Origin: Rebecca billardiae RCC1528
Lineage: Eukaryota > Protista > Haptophyta
Assembly (NCBI GenBank): GCA_965240325.2
Contig: OZ251223.1
Coordinates: forward strand, 248,001 to 312,000
DNA: 64,000 nt
Direction: 5' to 3'
Part shown: positions 7,765-55,998 of the stretch, piece by piece
Numbering within the stretch: position 1 is the first letter of the stretch
Layout of the letters: each line of letters starts with the position of its first letter
The notes under the pieces: generated by a model
What the model was told of the DNA's origin: nothing
The model's input: the letters and a program-made list of their open reading frames with translations, nothing else
The model's database searches: none
Program-made: the position numbers and the translations under genes

Positions 7765-10700
7765 ATGACCGAGCCGCGGAGGCCGTCGCTCATGAGCATG
7801 AGCGGCATGGGCGGCTCGCTGAGCCGCCTCGGCCTCTTTGGCAGCCGGCGGGCCAAGGACCAGTCACAGTCCTCGTCGCGGCCGACGCAGTCCTCGTCGC
7901 GCCGCGTCGGCCCCGTGCAGGACCTGAGCCGGCTGCAGCAGATCGACGACCAGGTGGTGACGGAGGTGCTCATGCAGCGCTTCGCCGAGAAGAAGATGTA
8001 CACGCGCCTCGGCGACTCCATCCTGCTCACGCTCACGATCCACCAGCCGTCCGAGTCGAACTACGCGGAGGACATCAAGCAGAAGTACCGTGACAGCCAG
8101 TCGTCGGACATCGCGCCGCACCTGTACGCGCTCGCTGAGGAGGCGTACCGGCGGACGCGCGAGAAGCCCGTCGTCGTGCCCCTCCTCATGCTTGGCGAGA
8201 CCGGCTCGGGCAAGACCGAGTCGGCGAAGGAGGTGATGCGCTACCTGCTGTGGCGCGCGAACGCGCTCCCGACGGACACCGAGCGCGGCACGCCGCTCGG
8301 CCGCGCGATCAACGCGTCGTTCGTGGTGCTCGAGGCGTTCGGCAACGCGCGCACGCTCCGCGGGCACAACTCGAGCCGCTTCGGCCTCCTCCGCCGCCTC
8401 GTCGTCACGCCGACCGGCCAGCTGAGCGGCGCGTCTTACCGCATCTTTGGCTTCGACCGCTGGCGCGTCGCCGGCCCGGCGGTGGGCGAGTACAACTTCA
8501 ACGTGTTCTACACGCTGGTGGAGGGCGCGCCCGAGCAGGTGCGCGAGTCGATCGGGCTGCCCGAGCTGCGCGGCTCGCGCCAGTTCAAGGCGCTGCGCGT
8601 CGGCCAGGCGCGCGCGGGCAAGTCGACACCGCTGATGCCTGGCGTGTCCAAGCGCGACGAGGCGGCGTCCTTCGCCGCCCTCTTCGAGGCGATGGAGGTG
8701 ATGGGCGTGCCGAACGCGTCGCGGATCTCGATGCTGCGCTTCCTCGTCGCGCTCGCCCACCTGGGCAACGTCGACGCCGCGCGCATGTCCATCCACGGCG
8801 CCGCGGTGCCGGTCAGCGCGCCGGGCGCCGCCGGTCCGAGTGCGATGGCGTCCGACGCGGCGGCGGGCGCGATGGCCGCAGCCGGCACCGCGCCGCGCCG
8901 GCGGTCCGTCACGCTGACCGCGACGGCGAACGACCAGCTGGTGCGCCGCGTGGCGCAGATGTTCGAGCTCGACCCGGACTCGCCCGCGGGCAACCTCCGC
9001 GCCGCGCTCCTCGGCCGCTCCGTGATGCTCCGCGGCGAGTCGGTCTCGATCCCGCACTCGGCCGAGCAAGCGGAGTGGTGCAAGCGCCAGCTGATGTGCG
9101 CGCTGTACGAGCTGGTGTTCCGCTGGCTGGTGGGCAACGCGAACGCGGAGTGGGCGGCGACCGACCTGAGCGTCGACGGCCCGATCAAGCGCACCTTCGG
9201 CCCGCGCAACCCCGCCAAGGGCTCGTTCATCGACGTATACGACATGCCCGGCTTCGAGGCGCTTGCGTACCCGGGTACACACAACGGCCTTGAGCAGCTG
9301 TGCGCCAACACGCTGGCGGAGCTGATGCAGGCGCACTTCGTGCGCGACACGTTCGTCGAGCGGAAGGCGGTGTACACGGCGGAGAACCTCCCGCCGCTGC
9401 CCGAGGAGGCGAGCGCCACGCCCAACCACGACGCGGGCCGGCTGAGCGCGATGCTGCGCGGCTCTCCGGACGGCGTGTTTGCGCTGCTGAATGAGAGCAC
9501 CGCCTCCTTCGGCGGCGACGCGGAGGTGGCGGCGGCGAACTTCGCGTCGGCGGTGAACGACCACCACTCGGGCGGCTTTGCGATCCGGCTGCCCGCGCGC
9601 GAGTCCGACGTCGAGGTGCTCTTCACCGTGCGCCACTACGCGAAGGAGGTCGCATACTTTGCGCGCGACTTTTGCGTACGCAACAACGCGGCGCTGCCGG
9701 CACACATCGCCAAGGTGCTCTCGCGCTCGAGCGCGCCGCTGATGCGCGAGCTGCTGCAGCTCGACCCGGGCGTGGTGCAGTGGGAGCCGAGCGGCGGGCG
9801 CGACGGCGCCGCCGTCGGCTTCGGCTTCGGCTCGGACGGCGGCGCGGGCGCGATGCGCGCGGCCGACCTCGCGACGACGACGCGACGCGGCTTCATCGCC
9901 GACAAGGCGCACGCTCCGCCGCTCGGGTACATCGGGTACTCGGACCGGTTCGAGCGCGAGCTGCGCGCGCTGGAGAAGCAGCTCGCGCTCGCCGCGCCGA
10001 CCACCACGCTCTTCGTCGTGTGCATCAAGTCCGCGCCGCTCATCCACGTCGCGCAGGGCGCGGACCGCACGACGGTGCTGCGCGGCGTGCGCGCGCGCGG
10101 GCTCGGGCTCGCGACCAAGCTCGTGGCGCACTCGTGGTCGCGCTCGATCGAGTACTCGTGGCTGCACCTGCGGCTGTCGGCGGAGCTGCGCAAGCAGCGC
10201 GGGCTCGACTGGCGCACCGCCTCCACGCTGCGCACCTTCAACACCAAGGACTTCGCCCTGCTCCTCGTGCGCGCGTACGAGGTGCCGGAGCACCAGCACG
10301 CGCTCGGCAAGACAAAGCTGTGGCTGCGCGGCCCGCGCGGCAACCTCTTCTACGCGCTGGTGAGCTCGGAGCTGGTGGAGTGCCTCCCGCCGCTCAAGAC
10401 GGCGCTGCTCGAGTTCTCCAAGCGGCGCCAGTCGCTCGAGCTCCTCGGCCCCTGGCTCCTCGCCTACCGCGAGCGCGTGCGCTTCCAGCAGGTGAAGCGC
10501 GCGGCGATCCAAATCCAGGCGCACGCGCGCGCGGCGCGCGCACGCAAGCAGCACCAGCTGCAGCTGGAGGAGCGCGAGCGCGGCAAGCCGGTGCACCGGC
10601 TGGGGGTGGTGGCGAAGCGGTTCGGGCTGCACTCGCACCGCACGATGACCAAGCTCTTCGGCATCGAGCACAGCCGCGAGGACGCCGCCGTCGAGCGGCG

Positions 10701-12627
10701 CGCCAAGCGGCTGCGCTCGCAGATCGACCGCCGATCGTCGACGCTCGTGACGACGGCGGTCGGCAGCGCGTTCAGTAAGCTGGAGAAGGCGGCGATGATG
10801 AACGAGGTGGAGCGGCGGTGGCAGTCGCTGGTGGAGCAGACGCTCGCGCGCGCGCGCGCCGAGGAGCGCGAGTACCAGATGCTCAACACCTACCTCTCGC
10901 GCTCGCGCTCGATGGCGCGCGACACGTTTGGCGGCGGCGGCGCGGACGAGGAGGCGGGGCGCGCGTCGCTCGCCGGCCGTTACAAGGGGCTGCGCCGGCG
11001 CGGCAGCTCGACGCTGTACCGGCCCGAGGCGGCCGAGGAGGCGCAGCAGCGCAAGCAGCTCGGCGTGCTCATCGGCGGCAAGACCATCGTCGCCCTCGAG
11101 ACCGAGCTCACCATGCACAACACGTCGAGCACGCGCCGCAAGCAGATTGCCGCCGAGCTCGAGTCGACCGCGTTCCGCACCGGTCTGCGCGAGATCGTGC
11201 GGTACATCATCTTCCTCGCGCTGTTCCTCGCGCAGCTGTTCCAGTACTCGCTGCGCGAGGGGAACGACGTGCAGCGGCTGCTCCGCCGCGCGCTGCACGC
11301 GCGCGAGCCCGACGCCTTCCGCATGCTCGCGTCGATCGAGCAGACGTGGGAATGGCTGGAGGGAACTTTCCCGGAACGGGTCTTCCGCCCGCCCGGCTCC
11401 AACACCGACTCGATCGGCCGCGTGCTGCGGATGCACTCGCTGATCGGCGCGGTGCGCGTGCAGCAGGAGCGCGGCGTGGTCTCGAAGGAGTGCGTGCCGC
11501 CCATGTACAACGACGCCATGGTCGGCGTGTGCTACCCCGGGTTCACCGGACTCACGTACTTCGACCACGTCTCCAACCCGCGCTCGACGCTCGTCGATGA
11601 CCCGAGCCGGTGGGAGCGCTCGCTCGAGCCGTTCGGGTACGGCATGGGCTTCACGCCGACGGAGGTGGAGGAGGACCGGATGCTCCGGCGCGTGCGCCGC
11701 ACCTACTTCATCCGCGACCTGCCCTCCGACCTCACCTCCGAGCAGGCGCTCGACGCGCTGATCCGGCTCAAGCGCGGCAACTGGATCGACGTGCAGACGC
11801 GCCGCGTGGACATCCTCTTCACGCTGTACACGCCGAGCGTGCGGGTCTTCACGGCGGTGGACCTGCAGCTGCGCTTCCCCGAGACGGGCGGCGTGCAGGC
11901 GTACTCGTACTACAAGCAGTTCCTCATCGACCGGCACTGGCTCGTCTTCGACCGCGAGAACACGCTGCTCTTCCCCGCGGAGCCGGCCGACTGGGCGATG
12001 CTGGGCGCGGAGATCATGTTCTACTACCTGGTGGCGATGCAGCTGTACCGCGAGCTGCGCGCGCTGCGGATGCTCGGCGCGGAGGAGTACTTCAGCAACG
12101 CGTGGGCCGCGATCGAGCTCGTCAACATGGCCCTCTTCGCCGTCACCTGCGCGCTGCGCGTGCGCCAGATCGAGATGATGCGCGCCAAGGACTGGGCGGC
12201 AGACGTGGACGAGTTTGTGGACTTGCTCTCGATCGGAGAGATCCGCTACTTTGTGCAGTGGCTCACGGCGATGAACGCGCTGCTCTCGTTCATGAAGATC
12301 TTCAAGTACCTGACGATCTCGCCCAACCTCTCGATGCTCAACTCGACGCTCTCGCACGCCGCCGAGGAGCTCGTCACCTTCATCATCCTCTTCATCTTCG
12401 TCTTCCTCGCGTTCATGCAGGCGTTCACGATCGCCTTCTCGACGCAGCTCGCGTCGTGTCAGGATCTGATCGCTTCGTTCAACACGCTCTGGCTGATCGT
12501 GATCGGCGTGTTCGACTTCGTCGCGTTCCAGGAGGCGTCGCCCGAGTTCGGGCCGTACCTCTTCTTCATGTTCGTCATCATCATCTTCTTCATCTTCATC
12601 AACGTCTTCATCGCGATCGTCACCGGT

Positions 12628-12694
<67 letters not shown>

Positions 12695-14043
12695 GCAAAA
12701 GCGCGGCGGAGCGCGTGTGCGAGCGGCCGCGGCCGCGCGCGCGCGGTGCGCTCCGTGTGGAGTGCACGCCGACTCACCTGCTGCTCGCTCGCGCGCGCGC
12801 CCACCGCGCGCCCGACCGGCCGCGCGTCCACTCTCTGCTCTGTCTGCTGCCCTGTCTGCCGCCCCGCGCGCGCTCGCCTCGTGCGCGGCTGGCCGGCTAC
12901 GCGCCTTTGTGTCCGCGCCTCCTGCCCCGCGCTCGCAGAGTCGTTCAAGTTCATCAAGGAGTCGCGCAAGAACTCGGACCTCGGGGCGGACCCGCTCGCG
13001 ATCGCCATTCGCAACGGGTGCGCGCCGTGCGCGCCGAGCGGGCGTCGCGCGCGGGAGTGACGCCCGCCTCGCGGGCGCGGCTTCAGCGCGCGCACCCTTG
13101 CTCACGCGCGCGCTGCGCGGCGCGTGCGCGCGCTCGCTCGCGCGTGACTGCGCCTGCAGCCTCGCGCGCCGCTTCAAGGCGCTCCGTGGCCTGGCGTACG
13201 GCGAGAGTGCCGTGGAGATCGCGCAGGAGCGCGCCGAGAAGGAGGACAAGATCGACACGATGGGCGGGCGCAGCTACGTCACGCGCGAAGGGCTGAGCAA
13301 GGTGCGCGCGCGCGCGCGCGCGCGCGCTTGCAGCCACCAGGCGTCCGCGCCCACCGCGGCACCTGGGCACACTGACGCTCGCGAGCGTTGCGCGCGCGCG
13401 TGACCCGCCGCAGGTGATCGCGTCGGAGGGCGGCGACAAGCTGACGGGGCTGCTCGGCATCGAGGGCGAGGACGATGTCGACGCGATCATGCGCATGTTC
13501 GACAAGGACAACGACGGCGAGCTCGACGCCGAGGAGTCGCAGATGCTGCTCGAGATGATCCAGAAAAGAGCGACACAGGCGGAGCAGCGCACGCGGCGCG
13601 AGGACGAGGAGGCCGCCGCGGTGGTGTGGCCGGAGGTGAAGCCGCCGCCGCCGCCGGACGTGATGTACGCCCAGATCGTCGGGCACTTCAACAAGTGGGG
13701 CACGCGGCCCAAGTACGTCCCCGGCGAGATCACGCTCGAGGACCGCGTGAGCACGCTCGCCACGCAGTCGTCCGCGCTCGCGACCGCGATCGCGCGGCAC
13801 AACACCGACACGGTCACGGCGATCGACGACCTGGACAACATGCTCAACTTCCTCGCGTCGCACTTCGAGTCGCAGAACGTGTCCTCGAACATCGTCGCCG
13901 CGATCAGCAGCGTCGACGTCACCAGGCCGTTCTCGCTCAGCGGCTCGGAGAGCGCGGGCGACCCGACGCTGCCCATGCTGCTCGACCGCACCGCGAGGCA
14001 ACGGCGCATCACCGGACCCGGCGGGCGCCGGCTCTCGTTGTGA
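7765..14043 (+). CDS. Myosin motor-IQ-polycystin-2(TRPP)-type channel-EF-hand fusion protein; predicted exons 7765-12625, 12939-13017, 13160-13301, 13414-14043 (~1903 aa)
   Basis: Myosin motifs: PHLYALAEEAY, P-loop GETGSGKTE (8194-8220), LEAFGNA, switch-1 NSSRFG, switch-2 DMPGFE (9241), LEQLCAN, FTVRHYA, LGKTKLW, IQAHARAARAR. Polycystin motifs: S1 REIVRYIIFLALF, LIGAVRVQQER, CYP, LKRGNWIDVQTR, FTLY, FPETGG, MKIFKYL, S6 FFIFINVFIAIV. EF loop DKDNDGELDAEE (13501-13536). Three GT-AG introns keep the frame. Confidence 0.9.
12640..12692. repeat. (GA)n microsatellite in intron 1 of the myosin-TRPP gene
   Basis: Directly visible; explains the spurious ERERER in the ORF track. Confidence 0.95.
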
Positions 14044-14502: not shown

Positions 14503-15864
14503 ATGAGCACGCCAGACCTCCTTCACAAGCTGGCGGCACGCGGGAACGCCGAGGCGCAGTACAGGCTTGCAGTTGAGCTCATGGCCTCGGACGAGCCGAT
14601 GGCCCGTGATCTCCCAGCGGCGGTCGAGTGGCTGCGCAAGGCGGCCGATGCCGGGCACGCGCCTGCCATGCGCGACCTCGGCATCTGCTACATGAACGGC
14701 AAAGTCGTCGCGTGCAACGGTTCGACTGCGCGCGAGTGGCTCGAACTCGCCGCAGACCGCAACGACACCAAGTCGATGATGCTTTTGTCTGGATTCTTCG
14801 CGGATGGCAGGAGCGAAGTGAGCGTGCCGAAGGATCTGCCTCGCGCCTTTGAGCTCATGAAGCGCGCTGCAGATCTGAACGTCCCCGAGGCGCAGCAGAT
14901 CTTGGGCAACTTCTACTATGAGGGAACGGGAGTCCTCCGCGACACCAAGCAAGCCGTGACGTGGTGGCGCCGCGCTGCCGAGCAAAGGCACGCGCCGGCG
15001 CAGTTCGAGCTTGGCGAGGCATATCGGCGGGGCGAGTGCGTCCCGCAAGACACGAAAGAGGCGATGCGGTGGTTCCGCCGCGCGGCCGCGCAGGGCCACA
15101 AGATGGCGAAGGCCCTGCTGACGAGCCACGGTGGCACGAGATACGGGGAGGCGCCTGACGCTGCCATCGAGGCAGAGGCCACGCGGGCCGCAGCCGAGCG
15201 CGGGTGCGCGAAGGAGCAGTGCAACCTCGCTGGCCACTACCTCTCCGGGAAGCACGGCCTGCCACAGGACCACGCACTGGCTGCGCACTGGCTGTCGAAG
15301 TCGGCCGACCAAGGCCACAAGGAGGCGATCATGCCGCTGGCCAAGCTGTACATGGACGGGCACGGCCCTGTCGACCTCGACACAGATGAGAAACGTGCGT
15401 GGGCCACAACCGTTCTCGTTGCGTGCGCTGCAAGTCTCGGTGACGGTCTGGCTGTCAAGTTCCTTTGGAACATGCGAAAAGGCGGAGATCACGATGCCTT
15501 CCTGCTGCAGTCCGTGCGCGAAGCAGCGACGCAGGGCGACGCGTGGGCGCAATGCAAGTTGGGCGAGGAGCTGCTGGCCACGGGCGCGGCTGCCGAGGCT
15601 GGCAAGTTCATCGCTGCGTCGGCGCGCCAGGGCTACGCCGATGCGCTTGCGCTGCTGAACTCGGACACGGTGGCGACGGAGCGTGCCATCGTCACCGCTG
15701 TTTGCGCTGGCTGCGGCAAGACCGAGGAGCAAGCCACGAAGATGTACGCGTGCAAGACGTGCAGCATCGCGCGCTTCTGCAGTCGCGCGTGCCAGAAGCG
15801 CGCGTGGAAGACATCGCACAAGGCGGCCTGCTCGGCATTCGTCAAGGCAGCAGCAGCGGAGTAG
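14503..15864 (+). CDS. Sel1-like repeat protein with C-terminal MYND zinc finger
   Basis: Sel1 repeats (e.g. AQFELGEAYRRGECVPQDTKEAMRWFRRAAAQG) and CAGC..CKTCSIARFCSRACQKRAWKTSHKAAC. Confidence 0.92.
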   Translation: MSTPDLLHKLAARGNAEAQYRLAVELMASDEPMARDLPAAVEWLRKAADAGHAPAMRDLGICYMNGKVVACNGSTAREWLELAADRNDTKSMMLLSGFFADGRSEVSVPKDLPRAFELMKRAADLNVPEAQQILGNFYYEGTGVLRDTKQAVTWWRRAAEQRHAPAQFELGEAYRRGECVPQDTKEAMRWFRRAAAQGHKMAKALLTSHGGTRYGEAPDAAIEAEATRAAAERGCAKEQCNLAGHYLSGKHGLPQDHALAAHWLSKSADQGHKEAIMPLAKLYMDGHGPVDLDTDEKRAWATTVLVACAASLGDGLAVKFLWNMRKGGDHDAFLLQSVREAATQGDAWAQCKLGEELLATGAAAEAGKFIAASARQGYADALALLNSDTVATERAIVTAVCAGCGKTEEQATKMYACKTCSIARFCSRACQKRAWKTSHKAACSAFVKAAAAE

Positions 15865-17738: not shown

Positions 17739-26173
<8,435 letters not shown>

Positions 26174-26300
26174 TATATATATATATATGTGTATGTATGT
26201 ATGTATGTATGTATGTATGTATGTATGTATGTATGTATGTATGTATGTATGTATGTATGTATGTATGTATGTATGTATGTATGTATGTATGTATGTATAT
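26174..26300. repeat. (TA)n then (TATG)n microsatellite
   Basis: Directly visible. Confidence 0.95.
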
Positions 26301-26540
26301 GCCGATGACGCTATATGTAATCATCGTGAGCCGTGATCTGTCCTGCTCGATGTGCTGATGACAATATTATGACGCAGCCACTGAGCCCGCTGATCTGTGG
26401 CAATTTGCGTCGATCTGCTGTACGACACTGACTCGAGACTGATGATGACACCGCCTCACGACGGCTGTGGCTCACGCAGCGGCGCAGCGGGCGGCATGGC
26501 GCGGGAGCGCGCCGTCAGCGGCTTTCGATCGTCCCGACGA

Positions 26541-27377
26541 TCAGAGCTTTGCTCGTAGCCGCAGCACCCCCTCCTGCACCATGCTCGCCACGAGCACGCC
26601 GTCCGTGCTCCAGATGCGCCCGTGGACGAGCGCCCGATCGGCGCCCGCGACGTCGCTCCAGAGCTCGAAGAGGTGCCAACCGTCGGCGGCGATGACGGGC
26701 TCGTGGAAATGGATCGAGTGGTCTAGCGAGGTGATCATCTGCATCTCGTGCGTTGCCGTGTGCGGCCAGAACGCCGCCCAGAGGAACTGCAGGTCGCTCA
26801 GGAAGCCGATGGCTGCGGCATGCTCGGTTGGCGAGGTCGCGGCGCCCGCGTCCCACGCCACCCAGCAGAGCTGGCCGAGGCGGTCGACGCGGCGGATGCG
26901 CCAGCACACCTGGTCGACGCCACTGATCTTCGCCTCCTCCCACGCCTTCATTGCGCCCGGCTCGCACGTGCTCGGCGGCGGCACACTCGGCATGACTGGC
27001 GCGTGCAGCCGCTCGCCCGCCCACGCGCTGCCGCTGGGCGTTGGCGCCTGGAACCCAACGATCGCGGTCGCGATCAGCGTGTCGCTGCCGTCCTCGACGG
27101 CACTCACGGCGTACAGCTCGAAGGTCCTGCCCTCGCGCAGCGAGCGCACACGGTAGTGCGTTCGCACCATGTTGGAGGGCGCGACAAAGTGCACATGGAC
27201 GGCGTGCACGCGCTTGAAGCGCGAGACTTGGCTCGCCGCCATCATCGCGTGGGCAATAATCTGCCCGCCAAACGCACGCTCCGAGCTACGCCACCACCCG
27301 TTCGGCGGCGTGGAGAATGCGACTCCATCCTCCTTCGGGATGAGTCTCAGGAATGCGTGTCCTGCATCCGCCGCCAT
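26541..27377 (-). CDS. Acyl-CoA thioesterase II (TesB/ACOT8-like, double hot-dog fold)
   Basis: FGGQIIAHA, VHVHF, REGRTF, FLSD, SLDHSIHFH, DGVLVASMVQEG. Confidence 0.9.
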   Translation of the reverse strand: MAADAGHAFLRLIPKEDGVAFSTPPNGWWRSSERAFGGQIIAHAMMAASQVSRFKRVHAVHVHFVAPSNMVRTHYRVRSLREGRTFELYAVSAVEDGSDTLIATAIVGFQAPTPSGSAWAGERLHAPVMPSVPPPSTCEPGAMKAWEEAKISGVDQVCWRIRRVDRLGQLCWVAWDAGAATSPTEHAAAIGFLSDLQFLWAAFWPHTATHEMQMITSLDHSIHFHEPVIAADGWHLFELWSDVAGADRALVHGRIWSTDGVLVASMVQEGVLRLRAKL

Positions 27378-27750
27378 CGTGGCGATGCGTCCTCTCCTCC
27401 CCTATGCTGGCTTCCGCTGGGCTGATGCGGTGCAGTGCCCTCTGCGCGCTACTGCTTGCCACGATGGCGGCGGTCATCCGCGATGGTGTGAAAGGATCAC
27501 ATGATGAATGAGTCGCATCGGCTCCCGACGGCGCTACCGCGATGCACTCAGACGGATGCACTCAGTCGGATGGCACACAGGCGAGCTCGACGAGGCGCTC
27601 CGCGAGCGCGATGCCGCGAGCGCGATGCCGCGCGCACTTGTGACCACACTGACGGTCATGGCTGGTGAGGTGACGACATGCGGGCAGATCTTGAAGACGG
27701 CGTGATTGGCCATGGCAGCGCGCTCCCAACGCGCGAGGACGGGCGTTGGC

Positions 27751-30700
27751 TCACGCGCGCGCGGGCGCCGTGCCAGCGCCGCCACTCGCGATAGCGATGC
27801 GCTTCGTGGCGAGCTTCTGGAACTCGGAGCGGTGGCTGATGGCGAGCACCTGCGTGCGCTGCGCGATGCGCGCCATCAGACGCGCGACCACCTCCGTGTT
27901 GCGCTCGTCGAGCGCGGCGTCGAGCTCGTCCATCACGAGCAGGCTCGCCGGGTTGCGCAGCGAGCAGCTCACGAGGAGCGCCACGCTCAGCAGCGTGCGC
28001 TGCCCGCCCGAGAGCTCGCGCAGCTCTGAGCTCCACGCGAACGCGTCGGGCTCGGGGCCCGGCGGGCGCGCCGGCCGCACGGCGACGCGCAGCTCGTGCT
28101 GCAGGGCCGGCGCGTCGCGCGCGGCGGCGGCGGAGGCCGCTGCTGCCTTGGGCTTGGCCGCCTCCTCGACGATGGTCGCCCGCTTCGACGGCACGAGCTC
28201 CTCGTAGATGGCGCCGAGCGAACGGCGCACGTCGTCGAGCGTCGCGTCGACCACGTTGCGCGAGCATCGGTCCACGTCGCTGATGCCGGTGCGGAGGGTC
28301 TCGATGGAGTGCTCGATCGCGAGGCGCTTCTCGTCGAAGCGGCCGAGCTCGGCACGCGCCTCGTCCAGCCCCGCCGCCTGCGCGAGCACCGTCGGCTCGT
28401 CCACGTGCGCCGCGCGCTCGTCCAGCTCGCGCAGCTCTGCGCGGCAGCCATCCGCCAGAGTCTGAATCTCAGCCTCGAGCGCGCGCCACCGCTCGCCGCC
28501 GCCGCCGGCAGCGGGCGCGCGCTGCTCGTGGCCCTCGTCGGCGGCGCCCGCGTCGCCGGTGATCGGCCTCGCTCGTGCTGGTGCGCGGACGTCCGATGCG
28601 CCGCCATCGTCGCCGAGCAGCAGCGCCTCCGCGCGAGCGACCACAGCACCGGCCGCGGCAGGCTGAGCGGCGCTGGCGCGCACTGCATCGAGGAGCTCGC
28701 GCGCGCTCGGGGCAGCGGCGCGCGGCGCGCCATCGGCGGGCGCGTCACGTGCGGGCGCGTCGGTAGCGTCGTCGTCGCCCGCCGTGTCGGCCGGCGCACG
28801 CGCGCGCAGCTCGCGCAGCTCAGCCTGCAGCTGGTGCGAGCGCGCGCGCGCCTCACTCCGCTCCTGCTCAAGCGACACACGTGCGGCGCGCGCCTCGCGC
28901 AGCCGAGCGGCCGCGGCGCCGGCGGCCTCGCGCTCCTCGCGGTGCTTGGCGTGCAGCTCGTGGAGCGCCGCGTCGGCCTCGCGCATGCGCGCGTGCTCCG
29001 CCGCCTCCGCCGCGTCGCACTGCCCGATGCTCCACTCGAGGTGCTCGCAGTGCGCGCGCAGCAGCTCGGCCTGGCCGTGCGCGCTCAGGTCTGTGCGCTC
29101 CGCGCGCTCGAGCTGCGCGCCCAGCGCCTCGCGACGCTGCGCGCACGCGGCGCGCAGCCGCGCGGTCGCGCTCTGCATGGCGCTCGCGGGGCCCTGCGCC
29201 ACCGCCGCCGAGGCGCGCTCGAGCACCTCCAGCGAGCCGCTCGCCACCTCGAGCTGCAAGGCGGCGACCGCCTCGGCGGCGCGGCACGCCACCAGCTTGT
29301 CAGACTCAAAGGCGACGCGCGCCGCGCTCGCCGCGACGCACTCGTCGGCGGTGGCGAGTGTGGCCTCGAGCGAGCGCACGTGCTCGCGGCGCTCGTGCGA
29401 CTGCCGTGCGCGCGCGAGCTCGGCCTCGCTCGCCGCGAGCTGCGCACGCGCCTGCGCGAGCTCGCGCTCGGCGCGGCGCTGCGCGCGCTTGCTCTCGAGT
29501 GGCAGACTGACAGCTGAGCCGTGCGCGGCTGGCGCGCGGTAGCCGCCGCTGACCTGGTGCGCGCGGTGCCGCGTGCCGTCGCGCGTGATGCACTCGTCCA
29601 CGCACGGCCGGCCGCCGTCGCCACGCGCCTGCGCCGCGCTCGCCGCCGCCGCGAGCACGCGCTGCGCCGTCGCGCCGTCTCGCACGAGCGCGGTGCGGCC
29701 CACGGCCATCCCTAGGGCTGCGGCGTGCTCGCCCGCGCACTCGAGAAGGTCGAGCGGGCACGCGGCGTCCGAGGTCGCGCGCGCGCGCGCGAGGACCGCG
29801 CGCTGCGCGCGTACGAGCGCCTGCGCGTCGAAGCGCGCGAGCCGATCCGTCGGCCAGATGCGGACGGGTGCCGCGCCGCGGCGGCGGTTGGCTGCGACGA
29901 GCAGTCGCTGCGCATGCGCGGACGTGCTCACGAGAAGCACGGGGTAGCTCGGGCGGAGCAGCTCGTCGAGGGCGCCCGCCCAGCCCGCGTCGGCGCTCTC
30001 GGCCATCGTGAGCACCGTGAGCAGGCGCGGTACGCCCGGCGCGGAGCTCGCGTCCACACCCGCCCCGGCTGCGGCGGCTCCGGACTCGGCCCCCGCCGCG
30101 CCCGGCGCCGCCGCGTGCGCCGCTCGATCGAGCGGGTGCAAGGCGGCGAGCGCGCGCGAGTGCGTGTGCTCGAGGACGGTCGCGCGGGCGCGCAGCTCCG
30201 CGTGCGAGCGCTCGAGCGTCGCAAGCGTCTCGCTCGTCGCATCCTCGCCTGGTGCGCCGCCGCTCGCGGCGGTGCAGCCGGCGCTGCCGTGGGGCCCGGC
30301 CGGCGCGCGCGCGTCAGGTCCCTGCGCCTGCGCGCGGAGCTTGCACAGCCGCGCGCGGAGGCGGGCTGCCTGGTCGTGCGCATCGGCGAGGGCCTGGCTG
30401 GCGTGCGCGTGCTGCGCGCTCGCTCGCGCCGCGCCCTGCCGCGCCTCCTCGCGCGTCGCCTTCTCCCGCTTCGCCTGCTGCGAGAGGCTGCTGGCCTCTC
30501 CCGCGAGCGCGCGCGCCGCGCATGCGCCCTCTGCGCACGCGCCGATGGCTAGCCAGCGCTGCTCGAGCTCGGCCTCGAGCTCGTCGAGCGCGAGCTGCTG
30601 GCGCTGCAGGGACGCGACCATCGCCATGTGCTGTGCGGCCAGCTCCTCGGCGTCCGCGTTCTGCGTGCGCGCCTCCGCGAGCTGGCGGCGCGCGCGCGCG

Positions 30701-31510
30701 CCCTCGGCGCTCGCGAGCGTGAGCGCGCACGCTTGCGACTCGGCCGTTGTCGCGAGCTGCTCGAGCGCCTCGCGGCGGTCGTCGAGCGCCTGGGCGGCCT
30801 CGCTGTGCGAGGTGACGAGCGCTGCGAGCTCGCGCTCGGACGCGCCGAGCTCCGTCGCCAGCGCGCGCAGCCGCGCGTCGATCGACTCCGCCTCGGCGCT
30901 GCCAGCGGCGCGGCGCGACTCGATTCGGGCGCGCTCCGCCCCCTGGCGGCGCGCCCGAGTGCATGCGACGAGCTGGCCGAGCGTGCCGACGAGCTCGCGG
31001 CAGTCCGTGCGCCGGCCAACGAGCTCGCGCAGTGCCTCGACGCGCGCGAGCTCGCCCCGAAGGTACGCGATGTCCTCGTTGATCTTGTGCAGCTTCTTCG
31101 ACTCGGTCTCGAGCCGGCCGACCGCGTCGGTGCGCGCTGAGAGGTAGGTGGCGCAGCCGGCGGCCTGGACGATGAGCGGGCGCACGTTGCGTGCGTCGAC
31201 GGCGCTCGCGACGGCGGCCTGTCGGATGCAGTACAGCGCCTCGTCGGACACGAGCTGCTGCCGCTTGAGCCAGGCGCGCACGTCCTTGACCGTCGCCGGC
31301 TGCCCATCGAGCCGCCGCTCGCTCCGACCGGTCTTGAGCTCGACGGCGATCTCGTGCGCTCGAGCGCCGTCGCCTCCGACGACGCGGATGCGGGCGACCA
31401 CCGCGCACCGCGCGTCGCCGTCCGCGCCGTTCGAGCTCGTACGCAGCTCGTCGAGCCGCGCCGCGCGGAGCTTGGTCACGTCCTCGCCGAACGCCCAGAG
31501 CAGCGCGTCG

Positions 31511-31543
<33 letters not shown>

Positions 31544-31638
31544 TGGAGCACGCAGAGGCCGCGGTCGAAGTGGATCGTCTGCGAGCGCGCGTATGACTTG
31601 AAGCCCGTGATCGTGAGCGATTCGAGCCAGCTCGCCAT
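27751..31638 (-). CDS. Divergent SMC-family ABC-ATPase (SMC2-like), ~1295 aa
   Basis: GFKSY, Walker A GPNGCGKSN, LRAARLDEL, coiled coils, hinge-like CITRDG...VSGG, signature LSGGQR, Walker B/D-loop VMDELDAALD, ISHR. Confidence 0.88.
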
Positions 31639-31851
31639 CGCGCACGGCGGGCGCGTTGGCGGCGGCGGCAGCGGCAGCGGCAGCCAGCTACAGCGCTCGC
31701 AGGCGTGGGCGCTCAGTGCCGACCAACGGCAGCTCTGGGCAGCGCAATCATTGCCCAAACCATGACGCCCAGTCCGATTTCTGCCCGGCCGGGGCGGAGC
31801 CAGGATCGCATCAACGAGCGAGCGTGGCGGACGTGAACACAATGCCGACGC

Positions 31852-33679
31852 ATGCCAGCACTTGAGCCCGCGTCAGCGCTGGCAGAGTGCGTCGAGACTC
31901 CGTCCGGCTCGGCGAGGCCAGACCTGCTGATCAGACGCGAGCGCGCCTTCGCCGCGTACACGCCGCACGGTGGCTGGAGCAATCAAATGCGGCAGCTCAC
32001 TTTTGCTCTGGCGGTCACGACGAGGTGCGCGCGCGCGGCGCGCTTGGCACGTGCGCGTGCCCGCCCGCGGTGGTCCCGCTGACGCACCACGTGCCCGCCT
32101 CGTCTGTCGTCTCTGCAGGCTACGGCTCCCGCTGCATGCGCCGCCCGTCCTCACGAAGAAGACGTACATGGTCGGGAGCAGCGTGGCGCGTGCGCAGAGC
32201 ATGTGCTCCGGCGCGAGCATGCGCGGCGAGTCGAGCGGCGCGCTCAGCCGACGTGGCGACGCCGTGGACATCTTCGACGTGCTCGACGGCGAGGCGCTGC
32301 GTGCTGTGGGCGTCTTCCCGGCCGACGGCCCGCCCAACGCCACGGCGCTCGCGGCCAGCGGCTGGCACCGCCTCGACGTGTGCATCTATGGGCTCAGCAC
32401 AGTGCGGCTGAGCCTGCACGCGAGCTGCGCGCGCGGCGGGCTGCCGCCTGCGAGCGAGGTCGAGGCGAGCGCACGCTCGACGAGGCCGTATGAGGTGCCC
32501 CTCGAGTGCCTGCGACTCGAGCTCGACCGCGCGCTCCGCGCGCACGAGCGCGTGTGGCTCTCCTTCAGCTCGACAGACATGCTGGTCGCAGGCTGCAGCC
32601 GCGCCAGCGCGGCCTCGCCCGCGCTACATCTCAGGCCGGGCCTGCAGGCTGCCGCTGCGCGGATCGTGGACGGGTTCGGCGCCGTGGCCCAGCCCTCGGG
32701 CAGCGCTCGCCCTCGGCTCGCGTGCGCGCACGTGCGGTCCGGCCTGGGGGCCGGGTGGGACGCGGTGGGCGCATCCCCCTTCAAGAAGCAGCTGCGCGAG
32801 TCGCTCGCGGCGCTGCGGATGTGGCTGGAGGCCGTGCTCGGCGGCGGCTTCAGGGTGCTCATCTCGACGGACGGCGGGCGCGAGAAGCTGGGCCGGCGGC
32901 TGGGCGTGGTCGCGCGGGACTGCCTCGCCGCGGGGCGGTGCGCCTTCGTCGAGGACCTCATCCGCGCCCGCGGAGCACAGCCGCAGCTTCGCGCGCACCC
33001 AAGCCTCGAGGAGGCACTGCTCTCACAGGAGGCGTGCGCACTCGCCGACGCGCTCTTCCTCACGCGCGGCTCGTCCTACTCGCGCATGATTGAGGACAAG
33101 GCGCTGCTGCGAGTGCGCCGACGAGCCGCAGCCGGCCCCGGCGGAGGTCGAGTCGAGCGTGCCACGGCGCACATGCCGCCGCACCCCGACCACACGCTGC
33201 TGAGCTCGTGTTGGAGCCATCGTGCTGCTGGTGGTGCAGAGCCGAAGGGTGCCCCGGCGTCGTCGAGGGCGGGGCCGGGGTACCGCCTTGCCACCGAGGG
33301 CTCGACGCCATCGGCGTCCGCGCGAGCCATCAGCCACACAACGCCGCCCGTGCGACGCGTGATGATGGCGGCATCAGATCCTGCTATCGTGACTCACTCA
33401 TCGGCGGCGGCGAAGACGGCGAAGACGGCTCCAATCATCGGCGTGAATGACGTCAATGACGACGACGACAGACACGACTACGACTCCTCAGAGCAGCACA
33501 AACGCGTCGTCATGCAAATGGAAACGCCACGACCGCCGCCTGCGTCGCGAGCAGCAGCCGCGGCGGCGGCACCGGGCCACGTGAAGCAGCTGATGGCAGC
33601 GAATGTCACCGCCTACTCGTCGGCGGCGGTGACGACGGCAATTTGCAGCATATTCATCACTGCGACGACTGCAGCGTGA
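31852..33679 (+). CDS. O-fucosyltransferase-like (POFUT-type GT-B) protein; predicted intron 32025-32118
   Basis: HGGWSNQ, spliced RLRLPLHAPPVL, CAHVR, LISTD, SQEACALADALFLTRGSSYS. The C-terminal tail after ~33250 and the true start are uncertain. Confidence 0.65.
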
Positions 33680-33762
33680 CAGTATGTATGTACAGCAGTA
33701 AATGAGCCGCACCAGCTAGCTATATCCGATATCGTCGTTGCAAGTCCTGAGCTAGTGAGCTA

Positions 33763-33853
33763 CTACAGTTTACTATGATTTAACGTGCACACTTGGTTAA
33801 GGCGTGATTAACGCCATCCAACACTGCACAAAGACACCGCCACAAAACAGACC
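33763..33853 (-). mobile_element. 3' end of the same retroposon-like repeat; may extend to ~34390 or further
   Basis: Matches 17606-17701 and 56020-56070. The 5' limit cannot be set from this window. Confidence 0.7.
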
Positions 33854-46252: not shown

Positions 46253-49200
46253 TCACCGCGGCAGCTGCGCAGCAGCATGCAGCTGGAGCAGGAGCCCCTC
46301 GCCAAGGCCGCTCCCGCGCGGCTCGAGCTCGACCAGCACTTCGCCGCCGCTCGCAGCCCACTCGCCCGCGCGCTGGAAGCCGGCCACCGGCGGCGCGACC
46401 AGCGTGGCGCCCGCGGCGTCGAGGCCGAGCGCCGCCCAGTCGAGCGAGAGGCGCACGCGCGCGCGCGAGAACGCCCAGTTGGCGACGGCGACGGCCATCG
46501 GCAGCGGGGCCGGCGGCGCAGCTGGGCCGGCGCGCGCGGCGGTGGCGTTGAGCGCCGCGCGCCCACCCAGCCGCGGCCTCGTCCGCGCCCAGCTCTCGGC
46601 GACGTACAGCGTCGCCGCGGCCTCGCCCTCGCGGCGCGCGCCAGCGCGCTCGGCTGTCGCCCGCACGAGCGGCTCGCGCTCCCACTCGCCGCGCAGCTGC
46701 GCGCTGCCCAGCCCCATGGCGTCGAGCGCGCGCCAGAGCGGCCGCGGCTCGCAGCGCTGCGGCTCCGGGTAGATCCGGCAGGTCATGCCGAACACCAGCC
46801 CGCGCCACTGCGCCGAGTTGTCGCCGAGCATCTCGGCCTGCACGCCAAACGGCACGCCGGACACCTCCGCCAACCAGCCGTCCGGCTCGAGCGCGGCGTA
46901 CTCGCACTGCTCGCCGAACCAGATCGAGTCGAGGTGCGGGAAGAGCTCCATGTACGGCAGGTGCGGGTTCGCCGCGCACGACGCGTGCAGGTCGAGCGTG
47001 AACGAGCCCGGCTCGGGCCGCAGCCGCTCGACCACGCGCCGCAGCCGCAGCAGCACGCGCCGGTCGTAGGCCACGCCGTCCAAGTAGATGCCGTCGATGC
47101 CGACGTCGCGGATGAGCGCAGCGATGCCCTCGACCCAGAAGGAGTCGAGCCGGCCGCTGAACGCCGAGGTGGAGACCGCCGAGTCCATGCTCCCGTCGCT
47201 CAGCCGCTCGTGCCACGCGGCGTTGTACCGCGCGCGCACGTGCTCGGCCAGCCACGGGTGGCCGCCGCGCGCGCCGGGCAAGATCGCCTCGCCGCCGAGC
47301 GCGCGCAGCGCCCACAGCTCGGGCGCGGCGGTGGAGAGCTCGCGGTCCGTGTAGTAGAGCTTCACCTTCAGCCCGGCGGCGTGCGCCTCGTCCACGTACG
47401 CCTTGAGCACCTCGGTACCCAGAAACGGGTAATTGATATACGGGTTGAGCTCGTGCCCCTGGTGGATAATCACGACCGCGCCCGGCTGGTGCGCGGCCGC
47501 GCGCCGCACCGAGACAAAGCGCTGCATGTGGAAGTGGCGCGGCCGGATCGGCGCGATGGGCGGCGGCGTGCGCGCGGGCGTGAAGAGCAGGCGCATCGGG
47601 AAGCGGAGCTCGCCCGCCGCGCCGCGCGTCAGCTCGAGCTCGCCGGTCGTCACCGTCACCACAACAATCGGCAGCAGCTCGTCCGGGCCGCGCGCCGCTC
47701 GCGCGGCGGCGCCACCGCGCGCCGCGCCCGCGCTGCCCACGGCGGCTGCGTCGGCGCCGCGGCGGTGCGCGCGCGCCGGGAGCCGCCGCACGCGCACGCT
47801 CGAGCCGCGGTCGCCATTGCGCCAGCTCGAGGCGCAGAGCGCGGCCACGTACTGCCGCTCGTTCGCCTGCGCGCACGCCGCCTCCGCCTCCGCCTCCGCC
47901 TCCGCCTCCGCCTCCGCCGCCTCGTCCTCGTCCTCGTCGGCGGCAGCAGCAGCAGCACCCTCCTCGGAGCCCGCGGCCGAGCTCGGGGGTTGAGCCCGCT
48001 CGGCGCGGCGCGCGCCCCGCTCGCACGGCCTCTCAAGGTCGATGCCGCCCAGCCCGGCGGCGTCGAATCCGCGCGCGGGCGAGAGAGAGAGTTGCAGCCC
48101 CGCGCTCGCTGAGCCGAGCCACAGCCGGCCGTTCAGCCCGGAAGGGCCGTGCGCCATCGGCGTCTCCCACGTCCACACCCACGCGGCGCCGCCGTCCTCG
48201 CCGCCGTCGCCGCCATCCTCGCCATCGCCGTCGACGCCGGCAGCGCCGCCGCCGCCACGCCCGTCGGCCCTGGCTGGGTGCGACCAGTCTGATGGCAGGG
48301 TGGGCGAGCCGAAGGCGTTCACGTCCGCGTCGGCGGCGCGTCTGCCACGGCTGCCGCCGCGTGCCGCGCCGAGCACGCGCTCGATGCTGCCCCCGGCCCG
48401 GCCGAGGCCCATCGCGTACCGAGCGACATCGCCGCGCACAGGCAGCTCCAGAGTCAGGCTGCCCACGCGCACGGGCGCCCGAGCGCCTGCGGCGGTGGCG
48501 CCGTGCGCGTCGGCGCGGCCCGACGAGCCGAGCGGCGCGCTCCGCTCTCGCAAGCGCAGCGCGAGCTCGAGCTGCACCACGCCGTCGAACTCGAGCGAGC
48601 CCCACAGCTCGGCGTCGAGCACCTCCGCCTCCTCCTCAGCCTCCACCTCGGGGGAGGCGGTGGCGGTGGCGGTGGCGGTGGCGGAGGCGGAGGCGGAGGC
48701 GGAGGCGGAGGCGGAGGCGGATGGGTGTGGTGGCTGCGCGGCGTCGGGCGTGCCGCTGGACGCCGAGCGGTGCCGCTGCACCGGCCGCCGCAGCTCGGCC
48801 GCCGCCGACCACCGTAGCCTCGCGTCCGTGTGCTCATCCCAAGGGCCGGCCGTGCCGCCGGCTGCATCGCCGGCCGTACCACCATGCGACGTCGGGTCAG
48901 CTCCGGCAGCCTCGCGCGCGGCGGGCGCGCGCGGGCCGCGCACAGGGCGCACGCTCCAGCCGGGCTCCGGCGCCGCAGGCTCGGCCGCACCGGGCGGGCG
49001 TTGCGCCCGCGCGCCCTCGGCCGCGCGCCCCAGCGTGAGCCGGATCGGCCCCGCGAGCAGCGGCTCTGCGCCGACGCTCAGGGCCGCGGGCATGCTGAGC
49101 GCGGCGGCGAGATCGACCGCGCCGGCCGCGGGCGGCGCCGACGCCGCGCCGGCCGTGTCGGCCGGACTGCCGCCCTCCGGGCTGAGGAGCGTGACCCGCT

Positions 49201-55600: not shown

Positions 55601-55998
55601 GCTCGCAGGTGCACTACAGCGCACTCTGGGACGACCTCACGCCCGCCGTGCTCAGCGCGCGCGCGAAGATGCAGAAGCCGCTCGTGGACTGTCGGCTCGA
55701 GGCGGGCAACGCGCTGCGCGCGCTCAACAAGCCGCCCGCTGCCGCCGCCGCCGCCGCCGCCGCGGGTGATGGCAACGCGTCGGAGCCGGTGGAGATGGAG
55801 GGTGACTTGATCGACGTCACCGCGCAGATGCAGGCGCGCCGTGCTGCGCAGCGCGATGCAGACATGATCGACCTCGACGATCCGCGGTACGCTTCGGCCG
55901 GTGCCGGCTTGTCGGATGGCGCGTGCCCGAGCGCCGCGCCCGCTGCTGACGCAGCTGATGGTCCCCCGGCGCAGGTCAAGCCTGAGAAGTCGTCATAG
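52602..55998 (+). CDS. Dynamin-superfamily GTPase (SLIP-GC/NUGGC-like) with N-terminal SAM-like domain; predicted introns 53745-53847 and 55507-55608
   Basis: G1 GNTGAGKS, LPTSGVRACT (G2), WPLV, G3 DAPG, G4-like TQTD, helical C-terminus. The N-terminal VEAVCAWL...MDAATLLAL...GPRIKL is SAM-like. Confidence 0.8.

Follow-up and report, generated by a model that had tools for sequence, protein, structure and literature searches.

The window analysed here is the whole stretch of 64,000 nucleotides taken from Rebecca billardiae RCC1528 (contig OZ251223.1, positions 248,001 to 312,000 of the forward strand). At 7765-14043, on its + strand, lies a gene of four exons, whose coding sequence of 5712 nt specifies a protein of 1903 aa. 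The order of domains along the chain is: myosin head, lever helix with an IQ-like motif, linker, S1, TOP domain, S2-S6, EF-hand and helical tail. Exon 1, which is intronless and collinear with the proteins of three relatives (P0001, P0004 and P0006), carries the motor, the lever, the linker and the channel core. The features of the gene are the following:

7765-12625, +, exon 1, from the start codon to the end of S6 (aa 1-1620 plus 1 nt)
7915-10359, +, myosin motor domain (aa 51-865; Pfam Myosin_head, alignment to MyoE 4a7f, AF2 fold)
8194-8217, +, P-loop GETGSGKT (G144, E145, G147, G149, K150 and T151 invariant in an alignment of 45 myosins)
8368-8385, +, switch I NSSRFG, within HNSSRFG (N202, S203, S204, R205 and G207 invariant in the 45 myosins)
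9241-9258, +, switch II DMPGFE (only G496 and E498 invariant)
10498-10557, +, IQ-like motif RAAIQIQAHARAARARKQHQ, within the lever helix (aa ~870-940, ~70 residues)
10558-11076, +, lineage-specific linker (aa 932-1104, ~170 aa)
10765-10920, +, conserved helix of the linker (aa 1001-1052, core ERRWQ)
11077-11241, +, pre-S1 helix and S1 (modelled helix aa 1105-1159), no hydrophobic segment lying before it
11317-11898, +, Polycystin/TOP domain between S1 and S2 (aa 1185-1378; Pfam Polycystin_dom)
11992-12621, +, PKD_channel, S2-S6 with pore helix (aa 1410-1619; Pfam, sequence and fold matches)
12502-12516, +, selectivity-filter stretch IGVFD (TRPP consensus LGDFD; HMMER alignment to PKD2 and PKD2L1)
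12626-12938, +, intron 1 (313 nt, phase 1, GT..AG)
12939-13017, +, exon 2, post-S6 helix ESFKFIKE...AIRNG (tblastn of P0004 and P0006, spliced translation)
13018-13159, +, intron 2 (same splice consensus as introns 1 and 3)
13160-13301, +, exon 3 (tblastn of P0004, spliced translation)
13302-13413, +, intron 3 (same splice consensus as introns 1 and 2)
13414-14043, +, exon 4, with EF-hand, helical tail and stop codon TGA at 14041-14043 (tblastn of P0004 and P0006)
13501-13536, +, EF-hand loop DKDNDGELDAEE (12 residues, canonical by eye, conserved in the relatives)

Gene structure and distribution of the fusion

The original prediction had described one uninterrupted frame from 7765 to 12625, with neither intron nor stop between motor and channel, followed by three introns that preserve the frame. 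The frame is confirmed, since its 1620 codons are open without a stop and exon 1 carries both halves. The introns were placed at the same positions: all three have the donor G/GTGCGCGC and the acceptor GCAG/ (the slash marks the splice site), and every exon junction is covered by tblastn alignments of the relatives' proteins. Intron 1 contains a (GA)27 tract at 12640-12693.

Because the genome has 70% GC, the length of an open reading frame is by itself weak evidence. GC3 is 0.94-1.00 in one frame over all of exon 1, linker included; over aa 901-1200, which contain the linker, it is 0.96-0.97 in the frame of the gene versus 0.42-0.76 in the other two, confirming the coding-type codon usage that had been claimed for the linker. 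Domain matches, GC3 signal and collinear homologues all lie on the + frame only, and the motor-channel frame at 7765-14043 is far beyond chance. An antisense open reading frame of 1743 aa (7864-13095) was rejected, since a + strand with GC3-rich codons yields such a frame as a by-product.

The same architecture, collinear over the full length, is present in Diacronema lutheri (KAG8469622.1, P0004), in a Logan assembly and in an MMETSP strain that is 98% identical to Pavlovales sp. CCMP2436. P0001, P0004 and P0006 come from independent assemblies and, together with the window, make four assemblies that share the join. They are 46-48% identical to the window protein in the motor and 57-60% in S2-S6; among the three of them the motor is 62-66% identical, as conserved as the TOP domain. 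Protein identity is 47-66% in the available pairs, so that synonymous sites are saturated. In the MMETSP strain, cDNA contigs from two samples (L003 and L004) run from motor to EF-hand in one open reading frame of 1923 aa, have an in-frame stop in the 5' UTR and are spliced at the conserved junction of intron 1 (IVT/G), past which the ORF calls of the relatives and the gene model of CCMP2436 run on.

The gene could be an artefact if adjacent myosin and channel genes, or a mis-assembly, had been joined because stops are rare in DNA of 70% GC. Long chance frames do occur here, the antisense one being an example; moreover, the CCMP2436 annotation contains a channel-only model (KAJ1629262.1), and in one MMETSP assembly the mRNA is in two pieces, with a break just after the IQ motif (P0009 consists of aa 1-923 plus 11 unrelated residues and P0003 starts at Met959). 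Searches for sequencing runs of this genome, RNA over 9800-12600 and all types over 10000-11600, listed none. However, KAJ1629262.1 starts inside the IQ motif and reads into an intron, and is thus a truncated model, while we attribute the P0009/P0003 split to a GC-rich direct repeat at which the assembly broke, although shorter isoforms may also be involved. The in-frame GC3 through the linker, the conservation of the linker with its invariant residues and the presence of the same join in four independent assemblies all stand against an artefact. In fact, the conserved full-length architecture and the full-length spliced cDNA in two samples of a relative make two genes or a mis-join very unlikely, and we regard an artefact as extremely improbable, close to refuted. 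The locus almost certainly holds one real gene, which encodes on one chain a myosin head and a complete TRPP channel with an EF-hand.

Searched exhaustively, a set of 1.84 billion representative proteins contained no fusion beyond Pavlova-type haptophytes. The four taxa that share the design make up a small pavlovophyte clade within the haptophytes. Several long matches (P0257, P0130, P0164, P0138, P0173, P0181 and P0201) were considered as a possible second, independent fusion, and none has both domains. The neighbours of the gene in the window are not shared with the D. lutheri or the Logan locus; these two loci share GT92, BORCS7 and Syf1 with each other. Elsewhere in the window, Logan contigs of ERR14847148 and ERR14847151 match positions 26272-33789 at 99.8%, ungapped, and are uninformative on splicing.

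The myosin head, its lever and the linker

The head matches Pfam Myosin_head at 1.6e-76 (258.5 bits, cut-off 33.3) and aligns to MyoE 4a7f from the N-terminus through the end of the converter. Its AF2 model (pLDDT 80.9, pTM 0.80) was compared by Foldseek with known structures, giving TM values by target of 0.77-0.89 to myosin I, VI and X heads, with an rmsd of 3.9-4.3 Å for the best matches. The modelled motor has the full fold, converter and lever helix included.

Motifs were compared with the references GESGAGKT (P-loop), NxNSSRFG (switch I) and DIxGFE (switch II). Switch II reads EMQGAE, DMHGTE and EMHGME in the three relatives, with loss of Phe or Asp, so that G and E alone are constrained in the fusion clade. 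The relay (EQEEY..EGI.W), the SH1 helix (GVLE.IRI) and the purine loop (NP......Y), which are the elements coupling ATP hydrolysis to the lever swing, are all degenerate in the four fusions. The P-loop and both switches reported by the original prediction are present, and the relay that it also listed is degenerate.

On the side of actin, the fusions agree closely in the CM-loop (hairpin) region, which belongs to their best conserved parts. In the lower-50K helix-loop-helix, the consensus LLDEE...P...D..F aligns to LLNESTASFGGDAEV, off the myosin consensus; loop 2 is Gly/Ala-rich and weakly basic, and a basic cluster remains at its end. Given the departure in the lower 50K and the weakly basic loop 2, actin binding itself could be lost.

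The head is only 25-28% identical to any other myosin. In the motor tree, which sampled heads of classes I, II, V, VI, VII, IX, XI and XIX, the four fusion heads form their own clade (support 100) on a stem branch of 2.12 substitutions per site, outside these sampled classes. The nearest motor is that of D. lutheri KAG8464572.1 (P0164, SH-aLRT 96), a grouping that may be helped by a shared GC-driven amino-acid composition. This protein has a conventional myosin head with C-terminal EF-hands and comes from the same algal class as the fusions; unlike them, it has a canonical head (Pfam 8.9e-196) and no channel.

The lever is a long helix in both AF2 models. An IQ motif had been claimed, and the pattern IQxxxRxxxxR is present, but the match is weak (Pfam IQ 13.8 bits, under the cut-off of 20.3); the motif of the relatives scores about 17.3-20.6 bits. 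The helical linker of ~210 aa that had been proposed needs a small correction, as the segment following the lever helix has ~170 aa and is predicted to be partly disordered, holding a disordered Gly/Arg-rich stretch with an AF2 pLDDT of 35-65. Residues R1017-Q1020 of the linker are invariant across the fusions; its identity is 32-35% between the window and the relatives and 46-56% among the relatives themselves, and no Pfam family or Atlas cluster was found to be related to it beyond IQ-like features. Such a long linker, partly disordered in the model, fits a tether and gives no positive evidence for mechanical gating.

The TRPP channel and its EF-hand

A hydropathy scan detected nothing TM-like before aa 1141. 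Since no hydrophobic segment precedes S1 and the TOP domain lies between S1 and S2, the N-terminus is cytosolic, as in PKD2. The TOP domain (Pfam Polycystin_dom, 35.9 bits, cut-off 23.6) has the Cys pair C1243 (11491-11493) and C1256 (11530-11532), both of which are present in 43 of the 45 aligned TRPP sequences. The membrane part matches Pfam PKD_channel at 1.7e-25 (90.2 bits, cut-off 22.4) and, by HMMER, PKD2L1 5z1w and PKD2 at 1.5e-29; Foldseek retrieves PKD2 6t9o with an E-value of 5.5e-24 over ~500 columns. S5, pore helix and S6 are present in full, and no other part of the protein is better conserved. No stand-alone TRPP is more than ~32% identical to the protein. The EF-hand matches Pfam EF-hand_1 at 3.3e-5 with 23.6 bits, just under the cut-off of 25.4. 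In the profile check of a single chain that had been proposed, Myosin_head, Polycystin_dom and PKD_channel are thus above their cut-offs, whereas IQ and EF-hand fall below theirs.

The channel half resembles polycystin-2 and PKD2L1 in S1, the TOP domain with its Cys pair, S2-S6, the pore helix, a putative C-terminal EF-hand and the helical tail. It differs in what precedes S1, which is a short cytosolic N-terminus in those channels and ~1100 aa of myosin, lever and linker here, and also in the filter, LGD(F/I)(D/N) there and IGVFD here. V1582 occurs in all four fusions; among 41 stand-alone TRPPs, 35 carry D or E at this position. G1581 and D1584 are kept. The conserved change from Asp to Val suggests an altered ion selectivity.

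Possible roles of a head on the channel

To our knowledge, fusions of a cytoskeletal motor with a membrane protein are very rare; among myosins joined to a multi-pass membrane protein, only the myosin-17 of Ustilago chitin synthase has been characterised. The window protein is without Chitin_synth_2, Cyt-b5 and DEK_C (Pfam). The transmembrane examples in two large myosin classifications are chitin-synthase myosins, i.e. fungal class XVII and animal class 36 (PMC3942036, PMC5583752). A myosin-TRPP fusion is absent from both classifications, supplements included, and our literature search returned no report in which a motor and an ion channel are fused, in line with the earlier statement that a characterised fusion of this kind is not known. 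Class XVII (Ustilago Mcs1, Aspergillus CsmA) and mollusc class 36 share with the window protein an N-terminal, cytosolic and divergent head and a multi-pass membrane protein on the same chain, but their membrane part is an enzyme whereas here it is an ion channel (TRPP), in a haptophyte lineage. The class XVII myosin-chitin synthase is an analogue in design only and a phylogenetic link is not expected. The myosin-17 head of Ustilago Mcs1 tethers vesicles, with transient binding to F-actin and no motility (PMC3252574). Animal polycystin-2 is likewise a TRPP channel tied to the actin skeleton (PMC3393660); in animals the coupling is non-covalent, via adaptors such as filamin, while the present channel has an actin-binding-type domain on its own chain.

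The best explanation overall, and to our judgment a probable one, is a pavlovophyte fusion gene whose heads would serve mainly as actin tethers for a TRPP channel; the mechanism of an actin-tethered channel, drawn from motif conservation and from analogy, is put forward as a plausible but tentative proposal. The cytosolic head and lever are joined through a flexible linker to S1 of a TRPP channel with a cytosolic EF-hand tail. TRPP channels are tetramers, and as a consequence each assembled channel would carry four heads beneath the membrane. Because these heads keep all the residues for ATP binding and hydrolysis but have degenerate force-transmission elements, they may act mainly as nucleotide-regulated actin tethers, capturing, positioning or retaining the channel at the actin-rich cortex, and possibly loading it mechanically, much as fungal chitin synthase is served by its myosin-17 head. 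That the heads carry the channel over long distances seems less likely. Both ends could respond to Ca2+, the one by a light chain bound at the IQ-like motif, the other by the EF-hand, although any proposal of Ca2+ feedback must allow for the replacement of the filter Asp by a conserved Val.

The original prediction had put the protein forward as a candidate self-motorised channel, in which working motors would bring the channel to its site of action, either by hauling vesicles that bear it along actin or by shifting it within the membrane. The complete motor fold, the converter, the lever helix of ~70 residues with its IQ-like motif and the retention of all ATPase residues are in its favour, and a tetramer, or vesicles with many channels, would supply several heads. 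Nevertheless, relay helix and loop, SH1 helix and purine loop are degenerate in every fusion, switch II has lost Phe or Asp in three relatives, there is a single IQ, the stem branch is very long and the characterised analogue, myosin-17, shows no motility (PMC3252574), so that this reading stands as one option, unlikely and not the best supported. We give the same low probability to a self-contained mechano-chemical transducer, in which four ATP-driven heads would pull on cortical actin via the linker and control how much tension their own pore is under, with Ca2+ entry feeding back on the lever light chain and the EF-hand.

The opposite possibility is a pseudo-motor, that is, a head without actin binding that would work as a cytosolic ATP/ADP sensor or as a protein-docking module regulating gating. 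In its favour are the degenerate mechanical elements, LLNESTASFGGDAEV at the LLDEE...P...D..F site, a Gly/Ala-rich loop 2 with few basic residues and a head with only 25-28% identity to any other myosin; but no catalytic residue varies, motor and TOP domain are equally conserved (62-66% among three relatives), the CM-loop hairpin region is highly conserved and the basic cluster stays at the end of loop 2, and we consider it no likelier than a self-motorised channel. Somewhat less probable still is an anchoring subunit without a homomeric pore, which would join PKD2-type subunits as PKD1 joins PKD2 and bring the actin anchor. The acidic filter residue, replaced by Val in 4/4 fusions and present as D or E in 35/41 stand-alone TRPPs, points in this direction, whereas the complete and most conserved S5, pore helix and S6, the retention of G1581 and D1584 and an own EF-hand tail like that of PKD2 argue against it.

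Public databases list the fusion proteins as 'hypothetical protein' or 'EF-hand domain-containing protein'; with one truncated gene annotation besides, the result is also an annotation correction. For the fusion motor a new myosin class would probably be warranted, and the conserved Asp-to-Val change in the filter is a natural test of TRPP selectivity. If the transducer reading were true, channel and adaptation motor would be on one chain, with a possible role in touch or flow sensing at pavlovophyte flagella or haptonema. Polycystin biology asks how TRPP channels come to be positioned, retained and gated; here the link is covalent and, being present in four related algae, it allows each domain to be deleted or mutated on one chain.

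Reading frame and domain order of the fusion gene

Exon 1 is open from the ATG at 7765 to 12625, 1620 codons without a stop, which bears out the uninterrupted frame from motor to channel claimed by the original prediction. Because the window is about 70% GC, an open frame is by itself weak evidence. Between the start codon and S6, linker included, however, every 300-nt window has a GC3 of 0.94-1.00 in the frame of the ORF, versus 0.33-0.76 in the two alternative frames over the same stretch; the coding signal is therefore unambiguous and, as had been proposed, passes through the linker. A 1743-aa antisense ORF (7864-13095, minus strand) was rejected as a gene, being a by-product of the approximately 97% GC3 coding on the plus strand. 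The start codon at 7765 is credible, since an in-frame stop lies about 50 codons upstream, the relatives align with the RRPS-type motif at the N-terminus, and an opposite-strand pseudouridine synthase gene begins 309 bp from the fusion gene.

Splicing adds three exons through introns that share the extended donor GTGCGCGC (3/3):

12626-12938, plus strand: intron 1, donor G/GTGCGCGC, acceptor GCAG/
13018-13159, plus strand: intron 2, donor G/GTGCGCGC, acceptor GCAG/
13302-13413, plus strand: intron 3, donor G/GTGCGCGC, acceptor GCAG/

The frame is preserved into the EF-hand tail, as predicted, giving a CDS of 5712 nt (1903 aa, TGA at 14041-14043), each exon of which is matched in order by the full-length proteins of relatives (tblastn). 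Intron 1 contains a (GA)27 microsatellite (12640-12693).

Pfam places three domains on this one chain: Myosin_head (1.6e-76; 258.5 bits, cut-off 33.3), Polycystin_dom (aa 1185-1378) and PKD_channel (aa 1410-1619). The order of features is as follows:

aa 1-50: Ser/Arg-rich disordered N-terminus
aa 51-865: motor domain
aa ~870-940: single long helix, IQ-like motif at 912-931
aa 932-1104: linker, with a conserved helix (1001-1052) and a disordered Gly/Arg-rich stretch
aa 1105-1159: pre-S1 helix and S1, the earliest hydrophobic segment in the entire protein
C-terminal to S1: TOP domain with conserved Cys pair, then S2-S6
13501-13536, plus strand: EF-hand loop DKDNDGELDAEE, exon 4

The EF-hand_1 score of this loop is slightly below the cut-off (23.6 versus 25.4 bits). 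ERRWQ, the core of the linker helix, is invariant among the fusions, and a search for relatives of the linker (aa 932-1104) outside the fusion clade found none. The predicted model of aa 901-1620 is confident across the channel (pLDDT mostly >90) and matches human PKD2 (6t9o, E 5.5e-24, about 500 columns). In PKD2 the TOP domain lies outside the cell; motor, lever and linker are by this reasoning necessarily cytosolic, which would be the correct side for actin.

Several other genes and ORFs lie in the window: a Sel1-repeat protein with a MYND zinc finger at its C-terminus just 3' of the fusion gene (14503-15864, plus; Pfam), ORFs of 607 aa (66-1889, plus) and 2217 aa (18960-25613, plus), an SMC-family ATPase of 1363 aa (27751-31842, minus), a GH123_N-domain protein of 1554 aa (46253-50917, minus) and a dynamin-like protein (52602-55769, plus). 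The SMC-family ATPase has no close relatives in the protein collection besides its own copy.

Relatives and transcripts of the fusion

Proteins of similar total length matching the channel part include carriers of both PF00063 and PF08016. With membership set by cluster look-up and Pfam scans, the architecture search suggested by the original prediction returned three further fusions, making a family of four:

P0001: from the Logan assembly of SRR30872636
P0004: Diacronema lutheri KAG8469622.1, 1911 aa, annotated 'hypothetical protein'
P0006: MMETSP transcript ORF, 1923 aa

The four proteins can be aligned end to end, and motor identity among P0001, P0004 and P0006 is 62-66%.

Regional identity between the window protein and the other three fusions
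Motor: 46-48%
Neck: 52-57%
Linker: 32-35%
S1 and TOP: 45-53%
S2-S6: 57-60%
Tail: 41-48%

Two identical cDNA contigs from different samples (L003 and L004) encode P0006; in both, the 5' UTR contains an in-frame stop and the ORF is unbroken from motor to EF-hand tail, with splicing at an IVT/G junction, the site of intron 1 in the window. The fused transcript is thus shown in a relative, not in the organism of the window. At the same junction KAJ1629262.1, a 98% identical model from the CCMP2436 genome, continues into intron sequence. This model spans aa 897-1643 only and, being channel-only, was considered as evidence for two genes; it begins inside the IQ motif, and is therefore a truncated annotation that does not support two genes. 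In a further MMETSP assembly the mRNA is in two pieces, broken at a GC-rich direct repeat just 3' of the IQ motif; we read this as assembly fragmentation, and shorter isoforms may exist. Public records of the gene are fragmented (L003/L004; P0003, P0007, P0008, P0009).

State of the motor and of the pore

The predicted model of aa 1-960 (pLDDT 80.9, pTM 0.80) superposes on the heads of myosins I, VI and X (TM by target up to 0.89), and MyoE can be aligned with its sequence all the way from the N-terminus to the converter end. The P-loop (G144-T151), switch I (N202-G207) and, in switch II, the Gly and the Glu are invariant across an alignment of 45 myosins, which makes it plausible that the head binds and hydrolyses ATP. 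Switch II reads DMPGFE in the window protein and EMQGAE, DMHGTE and EMHGME in the relatives. All four fusions have a degenerate purine loop (NP......Y), relay motif (EQEEY..EGI.W, where a Pro-rich stretch stands instead) and SH1 helix (GVLE.IRI).

Identity of the fused head to other myosins is only 25-28%. A quick ML tree places the fusions in one clade (support 100), whose stem measures 2.12 substitutions per site; within it the window protein is the outgroup of the remaining three, and the clade lies apart from the sampled classes I, II, V, VI, VII, IX, XI and XIX. The nearest neighbour (SH-aLRT 96) is D. lutheri KAG8464572.1, whose conventional myosin head is followed by C-terminal EF-hands; this hints that the motor was recruited from within the haptophyte lineage, and the grouping may be partly due to a common odd amino-acid composition.

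Ca2+ permeation in PKD2 and PKD2L1 is shaped by an aspartate that lines the filter. In HMMER alignments IGVFD (12502-12516) lies opposite LGDIN and LGDFD of PKD2/PKD2L1; of 41 stand-alone TRPPs, 30 have Asp and 5 have Glu at this position, and all four fusions have Val and retain the second Asp. Asp-to-Val is a clade-specific, conserved pore change and, given the role of this aspartate, we would expect altered ion selectivity, or possibly a role as partner subunit.

Proposed role and distribution

TRPP channels are tetramers, and four heads on flexible arms would consequently lie beneath the membrane. These heads are conserved to the same degree as the TOP domain of the channel. The only studied precedent for a fused head, that of Ustilago chitin synthase myosin-17, captures and tethers vesicles, binds transiently to F-actin and is not motile (PMC3252574). 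Because the catalytic residues are intact, the lever-coupling elements degenerate and the heads conserved, and because of this precedent, we favour, at close to an even chance, a nucleotide-regulated actin tether that would position or retain the channel and might also load it mechanically.

The original prediction had put the protein forward as a candidate 'self-motorised' channel; the architecture is real, but self-transport by the heads is unlikely, given the degenerate lever-coupling elements and the non-motile precedent. An actin-blind, nucleotide-sensing pseudo-motor is to be considered just as improbable, and an anchoring subunit in heteromeric TRPP channels still less probable. An artefact is very improbable: the same motor-channel join recurs in two independent genomic assemblies, at the D. 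lutheri and the Logan locus.

In an exhaustive HMMER search (query aa 421-1620; 1.84 billion representatives) only two fusion clusters covered motor and linker, which makes the fusion look restricted to haptophytes of the pavlovophyte type; it also looks older than the split of the window's lineage from the Diacronema/CCMP2436 group. The best match after these clusters is a channel-only protein (159 bits), and the other long matches that were checked are PKD1-like proteins, tandem channels or ordinary myosins. In two paneukaryotic myosin classifications (PMC3942036, PMC5583752), Emiliania alone represents haptophyte genomes, the 2017 classification adding Prymnesium transcriptome data, and the main texts and the supplements searched do not mention PKD, polycystin or Pavlovales. 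Wider literature searches likewise gave no report of a myosin-TRPP fusion, so that its claimed novelty stands for the literature searched: the fusion is real and undescribed there. Its significance is bounded by the narrow taxonomic range, the functional roles given here being predicted, and it is a variant among transmembrane myosins and TRPP channels rather than an architecture without precedent.
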